The notes under the pieces are model-generated. The model did no database searches. It saw only the letters and a program-made list of their open reading frames with translations, and was not told the DNA's origin. From Mytilus californianus (taxonomy: Eukaryota), in assembly GCF_021869535.1 (NCBI RefSeq), contig NW_026262690.1, forward strand, positions 59,768,001 through 59,832,000: a stretch of DNA of 64,000 nucleotides, written 5' to 3'. Both the position numbers and the translations under genes were made by a program. Shown here piece after piece: positions 18,143 to 61,413 of the stretch; positions within the stretch are counted from its first letter, which is position 1, and the number at the start of each line of letters is the position of its first letter.

Positions 18143-19095
18143 ATGATGACATTTCGGCAATTGATAAAGCTCTCATGGAGATGTGGAGTTGCTTTGACAA
18201 GATCAAACTTCCACTCCTCAAACAGTATTTGTCTATATGATAAACCAACATATAGCAAAATAAGATATTTTTATACTACTATCATAGTTCAACAATGTAG
18301 ACAATTAAACACAAGAAGCCATTATTTCAAGAAAGAGACTGAAAGTTCTACAAATGATGAAGTAGAAAGTACAGACAAGTGGGATGGATTTGGAACAGTT
18401 TTAAAGGAGTTTCATTTAGCTGTAACAAAGTCAAACACTCAATTCACTATTCCATATTTTGAAGAGCTTGAATCAAGAGTTAAGGAAGAGAACCATCATA
18501 AATCCAAATTGTTTGACAATATTGTTATGATAGAATTTGAAGAAAATAATAATTTAGATGGAGCCAATGTTTTTTTAGAGTATTTGTCCCAGAAAGGAAG
18601 AAAGCTTGGAATTATTCCAAGAGTTGAGTACATAGAGTTATTAGGGAAAACTAACTGTAATCAAGAGCATGATGAACTTATTTACTCACAGTACAAGGAA
18701 TGTGAAGATTTTCTAGATATCCTAGACAGAAGGTTGTTACAAAAATTAATTTCTGCTTTTTCAACAACTGCAAAATGGAAGAAAAGCCTGGAATTTATTG
18801 ACAAGGTTGAATCTCCTAAAGGTTTACCGTTCTCATTTTATGTACCTATTTTAGAGGCTGCTTTGAACAATCAAGATTTAGAGTACTTCACTTCTACCTT
18901 TGACATGGCATACAATAACAGACCTTCACACGAGACCCATGAAAAAATCATTCAAGAAGTCCTTGAGAAAACTGTAGATGTATGTAAAAAGTATCCAGAA
19001 AGTGCAACATTTGACCATCTTCTCAACATGCTTCAAAAGTATTATGTATTTCCAACTGAAGAAACAGCAAACGACATACAAAACTACTTGGAAAA
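18143..19095 (+). CDS. PRORP: Mitochondrial RNase P catalytic subunit, coding exon 1 (mitochondrial presequence plus PPR-like helical region)
   Basis: 321-aa ORF with a basic, acid-poor N-terminus. Donor GAAAA|gtttgt at 19096 (phase 2) joins in frame to the downstream exons, which carry the NYN/PRORP catalytic motifs. The start could be either of the two adjacent ATGs. Confidence 0.88.
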
Positions 19096-19289
19096 GTTTG
19101 TATTTTAAGCTGTTAGATTATTTTATGCCAAAACTGAAAAAGCACAGATCTAGAATCCTAGTGTAATTTTAAATTCTAATTTCTACTAGTTGTTCTTATG
19201 TTTGGTTGTTACACCAATTGGATACAAAAGTGATCTTATGTTGATTTTTCATTGAGATAAAAACACAAAGCAATTTTGGTATATATATG

Positions 19290-19700
19290 CACTCTGAAAA
19301 AATCGTCCCTTCATAAATTTTACGGACACCATCACGAGTTGGTTGACTGTTATGGAATATCCGTTTCACAAATGACATCGAATATGTTCCAATTGTTCTA
19401 ACTACAATCCTGTCCCGTTTTCCCCAAATGTGACCTACTGAAATAGACTTATCACCGGGTTTGTACTAACATGAGCAACACGACGGGTGCCACATGTGGA
19501 GCAGGATCTGCTTGCCCTTCCAGAGCACCAGAGATCACCCCCAGTTTTTGGTGGGGTTCGTGTTGCTTAGTGTTTGGTTTTCTATGTTGTGTTTTGTGTA
19601 CTGTTGTATCTCTTTTCTTTTTTTAGCCATGGCGTTGTCCGTTTATTTTCGACTTATGAGTTTGAATGTCCCTTTGGTATCCTTCCCCTCTATTTTTCAA
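19290..19700 (+). mobile_element. 3' end of a Penelope-like retroelement (RT C-terminus plus 3'UTR), 5'-truncated, in PRORP intron 1
   Basis: Peptide FYGHHHELVDCYGISVSQMT followed by a GC-richer UTR. This resembles invertebrate PLE C-termini as I recall them. Confidence 0.55.
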
Positions 19701-19835
19701 AATACATGAAATTTGCAATAACTGTATGATGCACAAATATTTTGACAATGTATCTCCATCAATGTGGTATTATTTTCCATTTGTAAATAATAATGTGGAA
19801 TACATTGACTTGTAGTTTATTTCTCTTTTTTTCAG

Positions 19836-19877
19836 TATTTATGGTTGTAAAGTAAAGAAAACTGTTGTTAATTACAG
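19836..19877 (+). CDS. PRORP: PRORP coding exon 2 (42 bp, IYGCKVKKTVVNY)
   Basis: Acceptor ttctcttttttttcag at 19835 and donor CAG|gtatac at 19878. The phase 2-2 exon keeps the frame between exons 1 and 3. Confidence 0.8.
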
Positions 19878-20206
19878 GTATACACATATTCTAATAGTTA
19901 TTTGAGATTCAGATATTTTTATCCATTCTACACAATTATTATCATGATTAAATATCGAATTTTAAGTCTAAATCAAATTTGTAAATGCAAAATGAATCAA
20001 GTTTTATACTTTTAAGGACATTACCATAAGAATTGAGTGCTAAAAGTTTTATGAAGATTTGACTAGACAAAGTTTTTTTGATGGTTTTGATCAATGTATG
20101 ATTTGTACTTAACAATGCTTAATGTTTAAATAAAAGCTTGGAAAGTTACAGCATTCAAGACTTTTAAAGGTAAATTAACTTTCAGAAAATTGTTTTTTTT
20201 TTACAG

Positions 20207-58340: not shown

Positions 58341-59344
58341 AACAGTTAACATTAACAGACAGTCTGGGATTAAACTTTTTTTTTGGATTGTTATGAAACT
58401 TGGACAGAAGCTAATCTTCAAGACCATGAAATAGCATCCAAAGTGAAAGCTTGATTTTTTTTAATTCTGTATCTTACTGATAAATTGTCTTACTTTTTAA
58501 GTCAACATAACACTTGTACACTGACAGCAGCAATCATAGGCCAGACACAGGATGCCGCGAAACCCCTTACAAATTTTCCTGAAAAGTTAACAGTGGCACC
58601 ACCACTCTCCCACCATTATTATTGCTGAATTATTTTAAATATGCCATATTCTTTACTTTTTAACTAAAATTGCAATGGGCAAAGGGTGGCGCCACATACA
58701 AAACCATGAAATACAGTCGAAAAGATGATAAATTTCTAGAAAAATGGACTGAAATGAAATCTATACCTATTTAATGGCTAAAATATTTATAACATATGAA
58801 GCAGATATACATTATTTCTTATCATACTTTCAAAAATTAAACATTAAGCAATACATACACAGTGAATTTATTTGAACAATTGAATTTTAAAAAATGTACC
58901 TTTACAGGGCCGTTTATCATGTTTATTGGGGTTGCTAGCTCTACTCCTTTTGTGAAAATAACAGTTATACAGACTTTTTTTTCTACACACTTTCATGTGT
59001 TGAGCTGATTTTTAATATGTGAGTCTACTATAATGAGTTACAGATCAAGTTTATATTTGGTTCCGCTCCACTGACTTTTTCCTAAATTACGAGCTTTGGA
59101 CTGAAAATTTCATAAAATTAGCAGTTATACAGACTTTTTTTCTAAATTCCTTCTCATACTGAGCTTATTTTTAGTATGAGAGTCTACTCCATTGATTTTT
59201 GCTGGAATCATGGGTAATTGGACTTTCAAAATTTTGTGAAAATAACAGTTACACTGACTTTCAATCTCCAATTTTTACTCCTAAAAATGGCTCTGTGCTT
59301 TATTGGCAAATGGGGCAATTTGTGTCTTTTCAACACATCTAGTT

Positions 59345-60478
59345 TTTTATTTCCCCGCCATAGCGGTGGGCACATTAAGTTTAACCCTTGTCCGTCTGTA
59401 CGTACGTGCGTTCCAAAATTGGTTTCCATTCTCTAACTTGAGTTTGCCTCAACCAAATGTAATGAAACTTATACACAATGCTTATTACCGCAAAACACAG
59501 ATCAAGTTTGAATTTTGGTGGCATCACTTTAACCGTTCTAGAGTTATGCCTCTTTATAAATGGAAAAATTTCAAAATTTATAGTTTCCGTTCTCTAACTT
59601 AAGTTTTCCTCAACCAAATGTTATGAAACTTATACACAATGCTTATTACCACAAAACACAGATCAAGTTTGAATTTTGGTGGCGTCACTTTTATCGTTCT
59701 AGAGTTATGCCCCTTTATAAATGGAAAATTTGCAAAATTTTTATTTTCTTCTAAATATCAAGTAATTTTTTTAAATTGGAGTTATCTTCCTTTGTCGATG
59801 ATTATAGTTGAATCAACTACAATCAATGCTTAATACAATGCAATGTTTAATTTTGAATTCCACTGATAAAACACAGATCAAGTTGAATTTGGGTAGTGTC
59901 ACTTTAACCATTATTGAGTTATGCCCCTTTATAAATCGAAAGATTGCAAAATTTTTAGTTTCCATTCTGTAACTTAAGTTTGCCCCAACCAAACATTATG
60001 AAACCTATACACAAAACTAAGATCAAGTACAAATTTTTTGTTTCCGTTTTCTAACTTTAGTTTGCCGCAACCAAATGTTATGAAACTTATACACAATGCT
60101 TATTACTACATAATACAGATTAAGTACGAAATTTGGTGGCGACACTTTTACCCTTCTTGAGTTATGTCCCTTTATAAACATAAAAATTGCAGAAATTTTC
60201 GTTTCCGTTCTCTAACTTTAATTTGTCTCAACCAAATGTTATAAAACTTATACACAACAGTTCTAGAGTTATGCGTGTTTACAAATAGAAAAATTGCTGA
60301 ATTTTTCGTTTCTGTTCTCTACTTAAGTTAGCCTCAACCAAATGTTATGAGACTTACACACAATGCTTATTACCACAATACTCAGATCAAGTTCAAATTT
60401 GGGTAGCGTCACTTTTACCGTTTTTCAGTTATGTCCCTTTATAACTATATGATATGCAAGCGGGGGCATCATCTGTGT
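59345..60478 (-). mobile_element. HINE-like element with tandem units containing ctcaaccaaatgttatgaaacttatacacaatgc
   Basis: Hairpin cccgccatagcggtggg at about 59353, (CGTA)-type microsatellite and at least 7 degenerate units. Confidence 0.6.
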
Positions 60479-61015
60479 CATCTTCGCTAGCCAAGGGTTA
60501 CGATCCACTTCCCTCCTCTCCACCCTTGGCAGATTGAGATAGAATTTCGGAGACACAAGATAATGATTTTCATTGGTTGCAGTCGAAACTCGCTGCATCC
60601 AATCAAAAAGCGCCTATAACATGATCACGTGTAAATGAAGAAAGTGTATGTAAACAATTGCCACGTGCTTATTGTGCTACAAGTCTTTACATCCCTAAAC
60701 ATACGACTATATTTAGTGACAATTTGAATGTTTTTAATCAACTTATAGAAGTGTATGTTTCTTGCACAAATGCATGAATGTCAACGTATATTTTCGTGTC
60801 CTGCTTTACCAAGTGTGTAGAATCTAGACGCTACCGTGTTTTTACCTCCAAATTGAAGAGTTCAAGTGCTACCATTGGTCAGAATAATGTATTTGGAATG
60901 GGCGTGACTTTAATCTACCGAAAGATGGCGCAACATTGTTATCACAAATGTTGGCTTAATCTGCCAAGGGTGGAGAGGAGGGGAAGTGGATCGTAACCCT
61001 TGGCTAGCGAAGATA
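60479..61015. mobile_element. 537-bp MITE with about 57-bp TIRs and 9-bp TSD (Mutator-like)
   Basis: TIRs at 60479-60535 and 60958-61015 differ by one indel and one terminal mismatch. TSD catctgtgt at 60470-60478 and 61016-61024. Confidence 0.85.
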
Positions 61016-61318
61016 CATCTGTGTCCACATGTGGACACTATCCACATTTATTGTGTTGTGTCATTGTCTCATTAATGAAAATCACATCTCCTTGATATGT
61101 AGAACAGGCGAGACATTTCGGCATATGCACTCTTGTTATTATAGTGAACCTGATATTGATACTGTTGCATTTTTTGCATTAAATAATTTCTGAATTTAAT
61201 GTTTTGAAAAACTATTTTCTCCTTGATAACCATGATAACAGAACAAGTTAATATATTTGTCAATGTTATTATTTATTTATACATGCATTAGTAAAAAAAA
61301 TTTGAATCTGTTTTACAG

Positions 61319-61413
61319 AGTATGCCTTTAAAGCTATAAACCAAGGAGGGTTAACATCAGTTGCTATTCGTGGAAAAGATAGTGCTGTTTGTGTTACACA
61401 GAAAAAAGTTCCA
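61319..61413 (+). CDS. PSMA6: PSMA6 exon 2 ([32 protein letters not shown]); gene continues beyond the window
   Basis: Acceptor ctgttttacag and donor CCA|gtaagt. The exon is in frame with exon 1 and nearly identical to human PSMA6. Confidence 0.95.

Follow-up and report, generated by a model that had tools for sequence, protein, structure and literature searches.

The window analysed here, a 64-kb stretch of Mytilus californianus DNA, harbours three genes: PRORP on the plus strand (18143-23533), SLC35B2 on the minus strand (36335-39853, with an additional 5' exon near 40.37 kb) and PSMA6 on the plus strand (54284-61413), the last represented by its first two coding exons. PRORP is the protein-only RNase P, also called MRPP3 (human alias KIAA0391), SLC35B2 is the adenosine 3'-phospho 5'-phosphosulfate transporter 1 (PAPST1), and PSMA6 is the alpha type-6 subunit of the 20S proteasome, alpha1 in yeast. 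The features are as follows.

18143..19095, plus strand: PRORP coding exon 1 (ATG at 18143; 321-aa ORF; donor picked by frame and consensus)
20207..20462, plus strand: PRORP coding exon 2, in which the metallonuclease domain begins (PF16953, 1.3e-16, profile positions 5-79)
20933..21045, plus strand: PRORP coding exon 3 (open frame joining exons 2 and 4, canonical GT-AG)
22280..22472, plus strand: PRORP coding exon 4 (PF16953, 2.8e-13, profile positions 139-203)
23396..23533, plus strand: PRORP final coding exon, including the stop codon (PF16953, 3.9e-4, profile positions 199-242)
23534..36334, no strand: tail-to-tail spacer between PRORP and SLC35B2 (12.8 kb, repeat-filled, no gene detected)
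36335..37437, minus strand: SLC35B2 last coding exon with stop codon (Pfam UAA, 1.2e-49; exon boundary at 37437 set by transcript contigs)
39652..39872, minus strand: SLC35B2 upstream coding exon, exon 2 (tblastn with the Mytilus protein, 90% identity; splice sites read)
40343..40372, minus strand: SLC35B2 5' exon (homologous to the exon annotated as first coding in M. galloprovincialis)
40373..54283, no strand: head-to-head spacer between SLC35B2 and PSMA6 (~14 kb, repeat-filled)
54284..54359, plus strand: PSMA6 coding exon 1 (Pfam Proteasome_A_N, 1.2e-8; GT donor at 54360)
61319..61413, plus strand: PSMA6 coding exon 2 (AG acceptor and GT donor; PDB proteasome alpha type-6, 3.8e-13)

The five PRORP exons join at canonical GT-AG sites into a 550-aa protein with zero internal stops, the annotated M. 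galloprovincialis protein being 558 aa long. Exon 4 and the last exon are 97% and 96% identical, respectively, to those of M. galloprovincialis. PRORP proteins are recognised by a C-terminal PF16953 metallonuclease domain that follows a PPR-type N-terminal region, and three of the mussel exons match PF16953. The PPR region has no match in Pfam, and exon 1 taken alone has none in Pfam or the PDB. That exon encodes a presequence-like N-terminus and a poorly conserved PPR-type region.

As for SLC35B2, most of the transporter is encoded by the 36335..37437 exon. The long single ORF had raised the question of a retrocopy, which is ruled out by the upstream coding exon and by the intron at 37438-39651, confirmed by two transcript contigs (runs X1 and X2): the gene is multi-exonic and spliced. 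The contigs extend 49-52 bases upstream of exon 2. The start codon is probably at 39853; as the 5' exon has its ATG in a different frame from exon 2, it is probably untranslated in this mussel. Among the best 120 database matches listed, those that are named are overwhelmingly PAPST1/SLC35B2 proteins from molluscs to vertebrates; by these matches, the mussel protein is closer to PAPST1 than to SLC35B1, B3 or B4. A few of these 120 entries are 'hypothetical' or evidently mislabelled. Identity amounts to 94% with the Mytilus protein and 61-63% with vertebrate ones, and SLC35B1 structures match the mussel protein far more weakly (1e-39).

The PSMA6 fragment carries the N-terminal signature of alpha subunits and matches type-6 best in the PDB (3.8e-13, versus 2.9e-7 for yeast alpha1, with other alpha types reaching no better than 0.12), an assignment made on the 57 of ~246 residues that lie in the window. 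The PSMA6 exons all encode fewer than 75 aa.

An earlier note, made from the sequence alone, had proposed that these three genes are consecutive in this order and on these strands, with no other gene between them. Domain, homology and splice evidence bear out the order, and the spacers appear to be gene-free as proposed. Searches of both spacers for tRNAs and Rfam families gave no match, and the independent annotation of M. galloprovincialis has no gene calls in the orthologous spacers. The intergenic ORFs (41731-42198, 45391-45705 and others) lie within repeats and have no credible Pfam domain, their sole match being DUF3974 (E 0.014), below its cut-off. Tandem arrays are found at 33637-36283 in the tail-to-tail spacer, and at 40579-41091 and 45307-46572 in the head-to-head spacer, which also contains high-copy repeats with a DNA word depth of up to 10^6. 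One coordinate has to be revised. The start of PSMA6 at 54284 on the plus strand stands, whereas 61413, taken earlier as the end of the gene, is the end of exon 2: no exon 3 was found up to base 64000, and the gene thus runs past the window.

We compared this layout with eight invertebrate loci, from M. galloprovincialis, Lottia, Capitella, Saccoglossus, Ptychodera, Branchiostoma, Lytechinus and Lingula, covering ~10 kb on each side of SLC35B2; the comparison took in no ecdysozoan or non-bilaterian. Identical order and orientation (PRORP forward, SLC35B2 reverse, PSMA6 forward) were found in M. galloprovincialis, where PSMA6 exon 1 sits at the extreme edge of the locus (L001:2-40), and in Lottia, Lingula, Saccoglossus, Ptychodera and Branchiostoma. 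PRORP similarity was detected by tblastn in M. galloprovincialis, Lottia, Ptychodera, Branchiostoma and locus L008, and across the five non-mussel loci with the trio, identity in the PSMA6-specific N-terminus encoded by exon 1 amounts to 78-100%. In Lottia, one 91-aa gene call devoid of domains lies between SLC35B2 and PRORP. Relative orientation is constant in the window and at every locus that has the genes, with PSMA6 and SLC35B2 head to head and PRORP and SLC35B2 tail to tail. The sea urchin Lytechinus retains the PRORP-SLC35B2 pair, with PSMA6 absent at the site, and Capitella SLC35B2 has neither PRORP nor PSMA6 within 10 kb; these two cases indicate that the block can break.

An ancient bilaterian microsyntenic block may be defined by orthologues that are adjacent, without a conserved gene among them, and constant in relative orientation in at least three phyla that include protostomes and deuterostomes. 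The trio is adjacent in Mollusca, Brachiopoda, Hemichordata and Cephalochordata. As the same arrangement occurs in mussel, limpet, lamp shell, acorn worms and amphioxus, it was in place no later than when the protostome and deuterostome lineages parted. The earlier note had proposed that the order is ancient and kept undivided in this mollusc, and had called for a comparison of gene neighbourhoods; the trio linkage holds in Lottia, Lingula, amphioxus and Saccoglossus, with the pair in sea urchin and no linkage in Capitella. The note's own null was that an older PRORP-PSMA6 pair had received SLC35B2 as a lineage-specific insertion, and vertebrates, in which PRORP directly precedes PSMA6 (PMC3892944), would suit it. 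However, in all four of these phyla the two genes flank an SLC35B2 of unchanged orientation, which refutes a mollusc-specific insertion, and its spliced structure argues against arrival by retrocopying. We regard the insertion as next to impossible.

What might have held the trio together? Genes transcribed divergently from start sites less than ~1 kb apart may be classed as bidirectional-promoter pairs. The distances given here are ATG-to-ATG, since the PSMA6 Met codon is the called gene end in the five non-mussel loci. Between SLC35B2 and PSMA6, they are 164 bp in amphioxus, 394 bp in Lingula, 671 bp in Saccoglossus and 730 bp in Ptychodera. Lottia has a longer gap of 2690 bp, and the mussel studied here one of ~14 kb. 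The tail-to-tail ends of PRORP and SLC35B2 are 1.7-5.4 kb apart in the non-mussel species. Judging from distance alone, a bidirectional SLC35B2/PSMA6 promoter is a likely constraint: the block would be held mainly by divergent transcription of the two genes from one short common promoter region, and short spacers among small housekeeping genes would leave little room for breaks that do no harm. Both spacers appear to have grown to 13-14 kb in Mytilus through the insertion of repeats, with the order still unbroken. As the two genes are ~14 kb apart in the mussel and the order is kept nonetheless, the promoter constraint is not needed for retention in this genome. Neutral persistence of a compact block is a possible alternative to promoter constraint.

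The earlier note went further and proposed a bilaterian cluster of four genes, PRORP-SLC35B2-PSMA6-IkappaB, with the mussel IkappaB/cactus gene just downstream of PSMA6, beyond the window. Vertebrate gene orientations would fit a single IkappaB gene lying tail to tail past PSMA6. In pipefish, nfkbie precedes slc35b2 on the same strand, and human NFKBIA is on the strand opposite to PSMA6. Adjacencies in trout concur, with nfkbia beside psma6 and nfkbie beside slc35b2 (PMC10299181). Against this model, tblastn searches and a six-frame scan with a profile of three fish NFKBIE sequences detected no coding sequence for IkappaB or ankyrin repeats, either in the 64-kb window or at the eight invertebrate loci (~10 kb on each side of SLC35B2); the sole match was pipefish nfkbie (6e-50), the positive control. 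At the loci with a gene call past PSMA6, this gene is FEZ (amphioxus), a member of the Kelch-repeat kind (Lottia) or a 203-aa gene devoid of domains (Lingula). A weaker point is that a Saccoglossus gene labelled 'NFKBIA' belongs to a separate published block with PNO1 and SPAST on scaffold_504, its labels not being cross-mapped to ours. Thus, as far as the ~10 kb read on each side of SLC35B2 extends, IkappaB is outside the invertebrate block, and no IkappaB-class ankyrin gene adjoins the trio there or in the 64-kb window; an IkappaB gene at a distance of two or more genes would be compatible with these data. The bilaterian four-gene cluster, which these loci do not support, appears quite improbable.

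In vertebrates, the trio appears to have been resolved into PRORP-PSMA6(-NFKBIA) and NFKBIE-SLC35B2(-HSP90AB1). In humans, NFKBIA comes next after PSMA6 at 14q13.2, and NFKBIE, SLC35B2 and HSP90AB1 follow one another at 6p21.1. The 14q13.2 locus resembles the trio in that PRORP precedes PSMA6 in the same orientation. It differs in that SLC35B2 is missing from the interval in vertebrates, and in that the invertebrate gene past PSMA6, where called, is not IkappaB. Like the trio, the NFKBIE-SLC35B2-HSP90AB1 locus carries the same SLC35B2 orthologue. Unlike the trio, it lacks PRORP and PSMA6, and HSP90 replaces PRORP on the 3' side. The pipefish locus reads nfkbie (+), slc35b2 (+), hsp90 (-), with the IkappaB gene on the 5' side of SLC35B2, in the place held by PSMA6 in invertebrates. 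Three fish gene models fuse nfkbie with slc35b2. KIAA0391 (PRORP) and PSMA6 at 14q13.2 have been termed an evolutionarily conserved cluster (PMC3892944).

If an IkappaB gene ever stood beside PSMA6 in the ancestor of these loci, it would have arrived there on the vertebrate stem, after the amphioxus split and before the two genome duplications (2R). It is tempting to envisage a pre-2R arrangement of IkappaB (forward), PSMA6 (reverse), SLC35B2 (forward) and PRORP (reverse), of which one copy lost SLC35B2 to give 14q13 and the other lost PSMA6 and PRORP to give 6p21.1. Such reciprocal loss fits the gene orientations in pipefish and at the human loci, and we put it forward tentatively, its chances being somewhat short of even. 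The trout data complicate 2R followed by reciprocal loss, as the nfkbia/psma6 and nfkbie/slc35b2 loci share chromosomes, 4 and 8 (PMC10299181). Alternatively, a small translocation or inversion might have carried SLC35B2 alone out from between PRORP and PSMA6 to a place that chanced to be next to NFKBIE, with no reciprocal loss of duplicated blocks. The trout map positions, together with that of zebrafish slc35b2 on chromosome 20 (PMC2453328), are the expected trace of an intrachromosomal rearrangement. Nevertheless, relocation needs a coincidence, namely a landing beside an IkappaB paralogue in the very orientation that simple loss of PSMA6 would have produced, as seen in pipefish. HSP90AB1, which adjoins SLC35B2, moreover has its paralogue HSP90AA1 on human chromosome 14, which would suggest paralogous segments. 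We consider relocation rather unlikely. Should reciprocal loss of a pre-2R block prove true, the invertebrate trio would be the outgroup proving that NFKBIA and NFKBIE are 2R ohnologues, and the recruitment of an IkappaB gene to the side of a gene for a proteasome subunit would date to the vertebrate stem.

Taken as a whole, the account of an ancestral bilaterian trio that was probably held by a shared promoter, stretched by repeats in Mytilus and divided in vertebrates, with IkappaB outside, appears highly probable to us. The trio provides a clean, easily scored synteny marker, with three single-copy housekeeping genes whose layout is unchanged between molluscs and amphioxus. It also gives a defined pre-duplication state for human 14q13.2 and 6p21.1, which makes the origin of NFKBIA and NFKBIE and the resolution of the block after 2R testable on existing chromosome-scale assemblies. 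Furthermore, the length of the SLC35B2-PSMA6 spacer varies between 164 bp (amphioxus) and ~14 kb of repeats (mussels), which amounts to a natural experiment on promoter sharing.

In our literature search, no text was found that links SLC35B2 with PSMA6 or PRORP synteny, and no main text names the trio. It is not in the portions consulted of the supplements of PMC8851819 and PMC9023564, and may already be in the 2012 or 2013 block lists. Ancient metazoan microsyntenic blocks have been catalogued by Irimia et al. 2012 (PMC3514665), Simakov et al. 2013 (PMC4085046) and Robert et al. 2022 (PMC8851819), and an old linkage of a proteasome gene, TBP-PSMB1, goes back to Trachtulec et al. 1997, as cited in PMC3892944. 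The trio is one more among hundreds of catalogued blocks and reveals no new principle. Like those blocks and TBP-PSMB1, it consists of a few unrelated genes that are adjacent from protostomes to deuterostomes, in this case housekeeping genes, two of them head to head.

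PRORP, SLC35B2 (PAPST1) and PSMA6 follow one another in the AT-rich window (28-37% G+C, no runs of N), on the plus, minus and plus strands, respectively. Their coding exons are the following:

18143-19095, + strand: PRORP exon 1, predicted from GT-AG junctions and frame
20207-20462, + strand: PRORP exon 2, predicted likewise
20933-21045, + strand: PRORP exon 3, predicted likewise
22280-22472, + strand: PRORP exon 4, predicted likewise
23396-23533, + strand: PRORP exon 5, predicted likewise
36335-37437, - strand: SLC35B2 large exon, UAA transporter family (Pfam, 1.2e-49)
39652-39872, - strand: SLC35B2 upstream coding exon
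54284-54359, + strand: PSMA6 exon 1, canonical splice sites
61319-61413, + strand: PSMA6 exon 2, canonical splice sites

A 321-aa open reading frame begins at 18143, and three open frames downstream match the protein-only RNase P profile (Pfam PF16953; 1.3e-16, 2.8e-13 and 3.9e-4), which they jointly tile. The PRORP splice sites are predicted, canonical GT-AG junctions having been picked to preserve the frame. The five-exon assembly encodes 550 aa without internal stops, and its final two exons match the terminal part of the annotated 558-aa PRORP of Mytilus galloprovincialis at 96-97% identity. As for SLC35B2, nearly every named protein among the best 120 listed relatives of its exon is adenosine 3'-phospho 5'-phosphosulfate transporter 1, with identities of 73-94% in bivalves (94% to a Mytilus sequence) and 61-63% in vertebrates; solved structures of SLC35B1 are far weaker matches. 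In two public runs, transcript contigs splice 37437 directly to 39652; the intron is thereby confirmed and the gene shown to be expressed. Its product is 434 aa long, counted from the Met at 39853. Further upstream, an exon at 40343-40372 (- strand) aligns to the segment of the M. galloprovincialis locus (L001:10001-10038) that carries the annotated SLC35B2 start codon. Since this exon is 8 bases shorter than its counterpart, the ATG at 40372 does not share the reading frame of the exon that follows, and Met 39853 is the likely start. Either the N-terminus of the M. galloprovincialis protein is an annotation artefact or the start codon differs between the two mussels. Lastly, PSMA6 exons 1 and 2 contain the alpha-subunit N-terminal signature, and among solved structures they are closest to proteasome alpha type-6 (3.8e-13; other alpha types at 0.12 or worse). 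As exon 3 was not found up to base 64000, the window holds 57 of ~246 PSMA6 codons and the gene extends past its end.

The spacers between PRORP and SLC35B2 (12.8 kb) and between SLC35B2 and PSMA6 (~14 kb) consist of tandem and very high-copy repeats. A search of both for tRNA and Rfam families found none, their open reading frames gave no credible domain match, and in M. galloprovincialis, annotated independently, the orthologous spacers contain no called gene. Together with the gene identities, these results bear out the reading in the earlier note of three consecutive genes with no other gene detected between them.

Several other elements were observed. The repeats at 39901-42100 are of extremely high copy number (summed word depth of up to ~10^6 in one DNA run), and many RNA reads map to each strand. 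Among these repeats are a 169-bp tandem unit (40579-41091) and an element present as inverted copies (41086-41431 and 31561-31733). A composite satellite, made of a 135-bp array beside a 35-bp array, is present in two copies of opposite orientation, one in the SLC35B2/PSMA6 spacer (45307-46572) and one in PSMA6 intron 2 (63262-63997), and the M. galloprovincialis locus also has two copies. Upstream of PRORP and on the opposite strand, an intronless 684-aa open reading frame (5517-7571) has BTB (1.1e-22) and BACK (4.4e-4) Pfam domains, followed by ~440 C-terminal residues that match no Pfam family. A series of broken frames at 10045-13582 (- strand) represents a decayed non-LTR retrotransposon, one fragment of which matches the RVT_1 reverse transcriptase just short of the cut-off (9.4e-7).

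SLC35B2 orthologues in other animals were collected by protein search, and the encoding contigs were inspected over ~10 kb on either side of SLC35B2 in each species; all the species sampled are bilaterians outside Ecdysozoa. With SLC35B2 set to the plus strand, the gene orders are:

Lottia gigantea: Kelch-repeat gene (+), 246-aa proteasome alpha (-), SLC35B2 (+), domain-less 91-aa gene call (-), PRORP (-)
Saccoglossus kowalevskii: proteasome alpha (-), SLC35B2 (+), PRORP (-)
Ptychodera flava: proteasome alpha, SLC35B2 and PRORP as in S. kowalevskii, then a tRNA synthetase
Branchiostoma floridae: FEZ (-), proteasome alpha (-), SLC35B2 (+), PRORP (-), SMG8 (+)
Lingula anatina: domain-less 203-aa gene (-), proteasome alpha (-), SLC35B2 (+), PRORP (-)
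M. galloprovincialis: SLC35B2 (+), PRORP (-), with PSMA6 codons 1-13 at the extreme edge of the locus

The neighbouring proteasome genes share 78-100% identity and the same exon break with the 57 PSMA6 residues of the window, and their Met codon coincides exactly with the called gene end; on this sequence evidence, they are PSMA6. When reversed, all these loci read [PRORP ->][<- SLC35B2][PSMA6 ->], matching the window. The amphioxus trio sits at about 6.24-6.26 Mb of record CM022886.1. Chance cannot explain why three single-copy genes share one order and orientation across four phyla that straddle the protostome-deuterostome split, and the trio is at least as old as the last common ancestor of the sampled protostome and deuterostome lineages. 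The loci of Lottia, Lingula, the two hemichordates and amphioxus thus support an ancient three-gene order, and the same trio in four phyla refutes the null hypothesis of the earlier note, the insertion of SLC35B2 in a single lineage. Two species depart from this layout. Lytechinus pictus, a sea urchin, retains SLC35B2-PRORP and has an enoyl-CoA hydratase gene in the PSMA6 position upstream of SLC35B2; this lineage-specific change breaks the trio on a single side. In Capitella teleta, SLC35B2 has neither neighbour.

In Lottia, the gene converging on PSMA6 (L002:1-2715, + strand) encodes a 379-aa Kelch beta-propeller protein of the KLHDC type. Human KLHDC1 and KLHDC2 also lie on 14q, which hints at a wider conserved linkage.

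An IkappaB gene had been proposed as the fourth member of the bilaterian cluster. Three fish gene models in the database (P0144, P0154 and P0182; 764-775 aa) fuse nfkbie (ankyrin repeats) to slc35b2 (UAA domain). Each fusion is probably an artefact of read-through annotation, arising because teleosts have the two genes close together on one strand. The N-terminal portions of the models served as the IkappaB-epsilon query. Searches by tblastn and profile over all six-frame fragments of the window and of all loci gave a strong signal for the positive control, pipefish nfkbie (as low as 6e-50), and detected no IkappaB-like gene in the window or within ~10 kb of SLC35B2 in eight invertebrate loci. 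The genes called beyond PSMA6 are FEZ in amphioxus, the Kelch-repeat gene in Lottia and the small 203-aa domain-less gene in Lingula. These results do not support the simplest form of the four-gene bilaterian cluster; in this mussel, an IkappaB gene might still lie downstream of PSMA6, past the end of the window. In a published block table, a Saccoglossus gene bearing the label NFKBIA is grouped with PNO1 and SPAST under a different scaffold name, a weak indication.

How, then, did the vertebrate loci arise? Human NFKBIA lies on the strand opposite to PSMA6. In trout, nfkbia adjoins psma6 and nfkbie adjoins slc35b2 (PMC10299181); at human 14q13.2, KIAA0391 and PSMA6 have been termed an evolutionarily conserved cluster, in a region that also contains NFKBIA (PMC3892944). 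The pipefish order is nfkbie (+), slc35b2 (+), hsp90 (-). Given the human strand arrangement, a single ancestral order, [IkappaB ->][<- PSMA6][SLC35B2 ->][<- PRORP], could have yielded the two vertebrate loci. One copy would have lost SLC35B2, and the other PSMA6 and PRORP; such reciprocal loss is the appealing part of the proposal in the earlier note. If so, IkappaB would have become the neighbour of PSMA6 within the vertebrate stem lineage, once amphioxus had split off. Intrachromosomal rearrangement instead of reciprocal loss would also explain these loci: the psma6-nfkbia and nfkbie-slc35b2 loci of trout share chromosomes, 4 and 8 (PMC10299181), and in zebrafish, chromosome 20 carries slc35b2 (PMC2453328). 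Reciprocal loss should therefore not be taken as shown.

As the called gene ranges are coding ranges, the gaps between genes are ATG-to-ATG distances. SLC35B2 and PSMA6 lie 164 bp apart in amphioxus and 394 bp in Lingula; the two hemichordates have 671 bp (Saccoglossus) and 730 bp (Ptychodera), Lottia has 2690 bp, and the mussels reach ~10 kb (M. galloprovincialis) and ~14 kb (the window). Where the two genes stand head to head at such short range, they probably share a bidirectional promoter region, which, judging from distance alone, is the constraint we favour as holding this pair together. PRORP and SLC35B2 are arranged tail to tail, their ends 1.7-5.4 kb apart in the non-mussel species, and this pair is retained even in the sea urchin. 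In the mussels, repeats have enlarged both spacers, yet the gene order is intact, so that a compact cluster of housekeeping genes might also have persisted through plain inertia.

In full-text searches, we found no paper tying SLC35B2 to PSMA6 or PRORP by synteny, and genome-wide microsynteny catalogues may list the trio. The trio is newly documented in explicit form, and it belongs to a kind of feature, the microsyntenic block, that is already well known.
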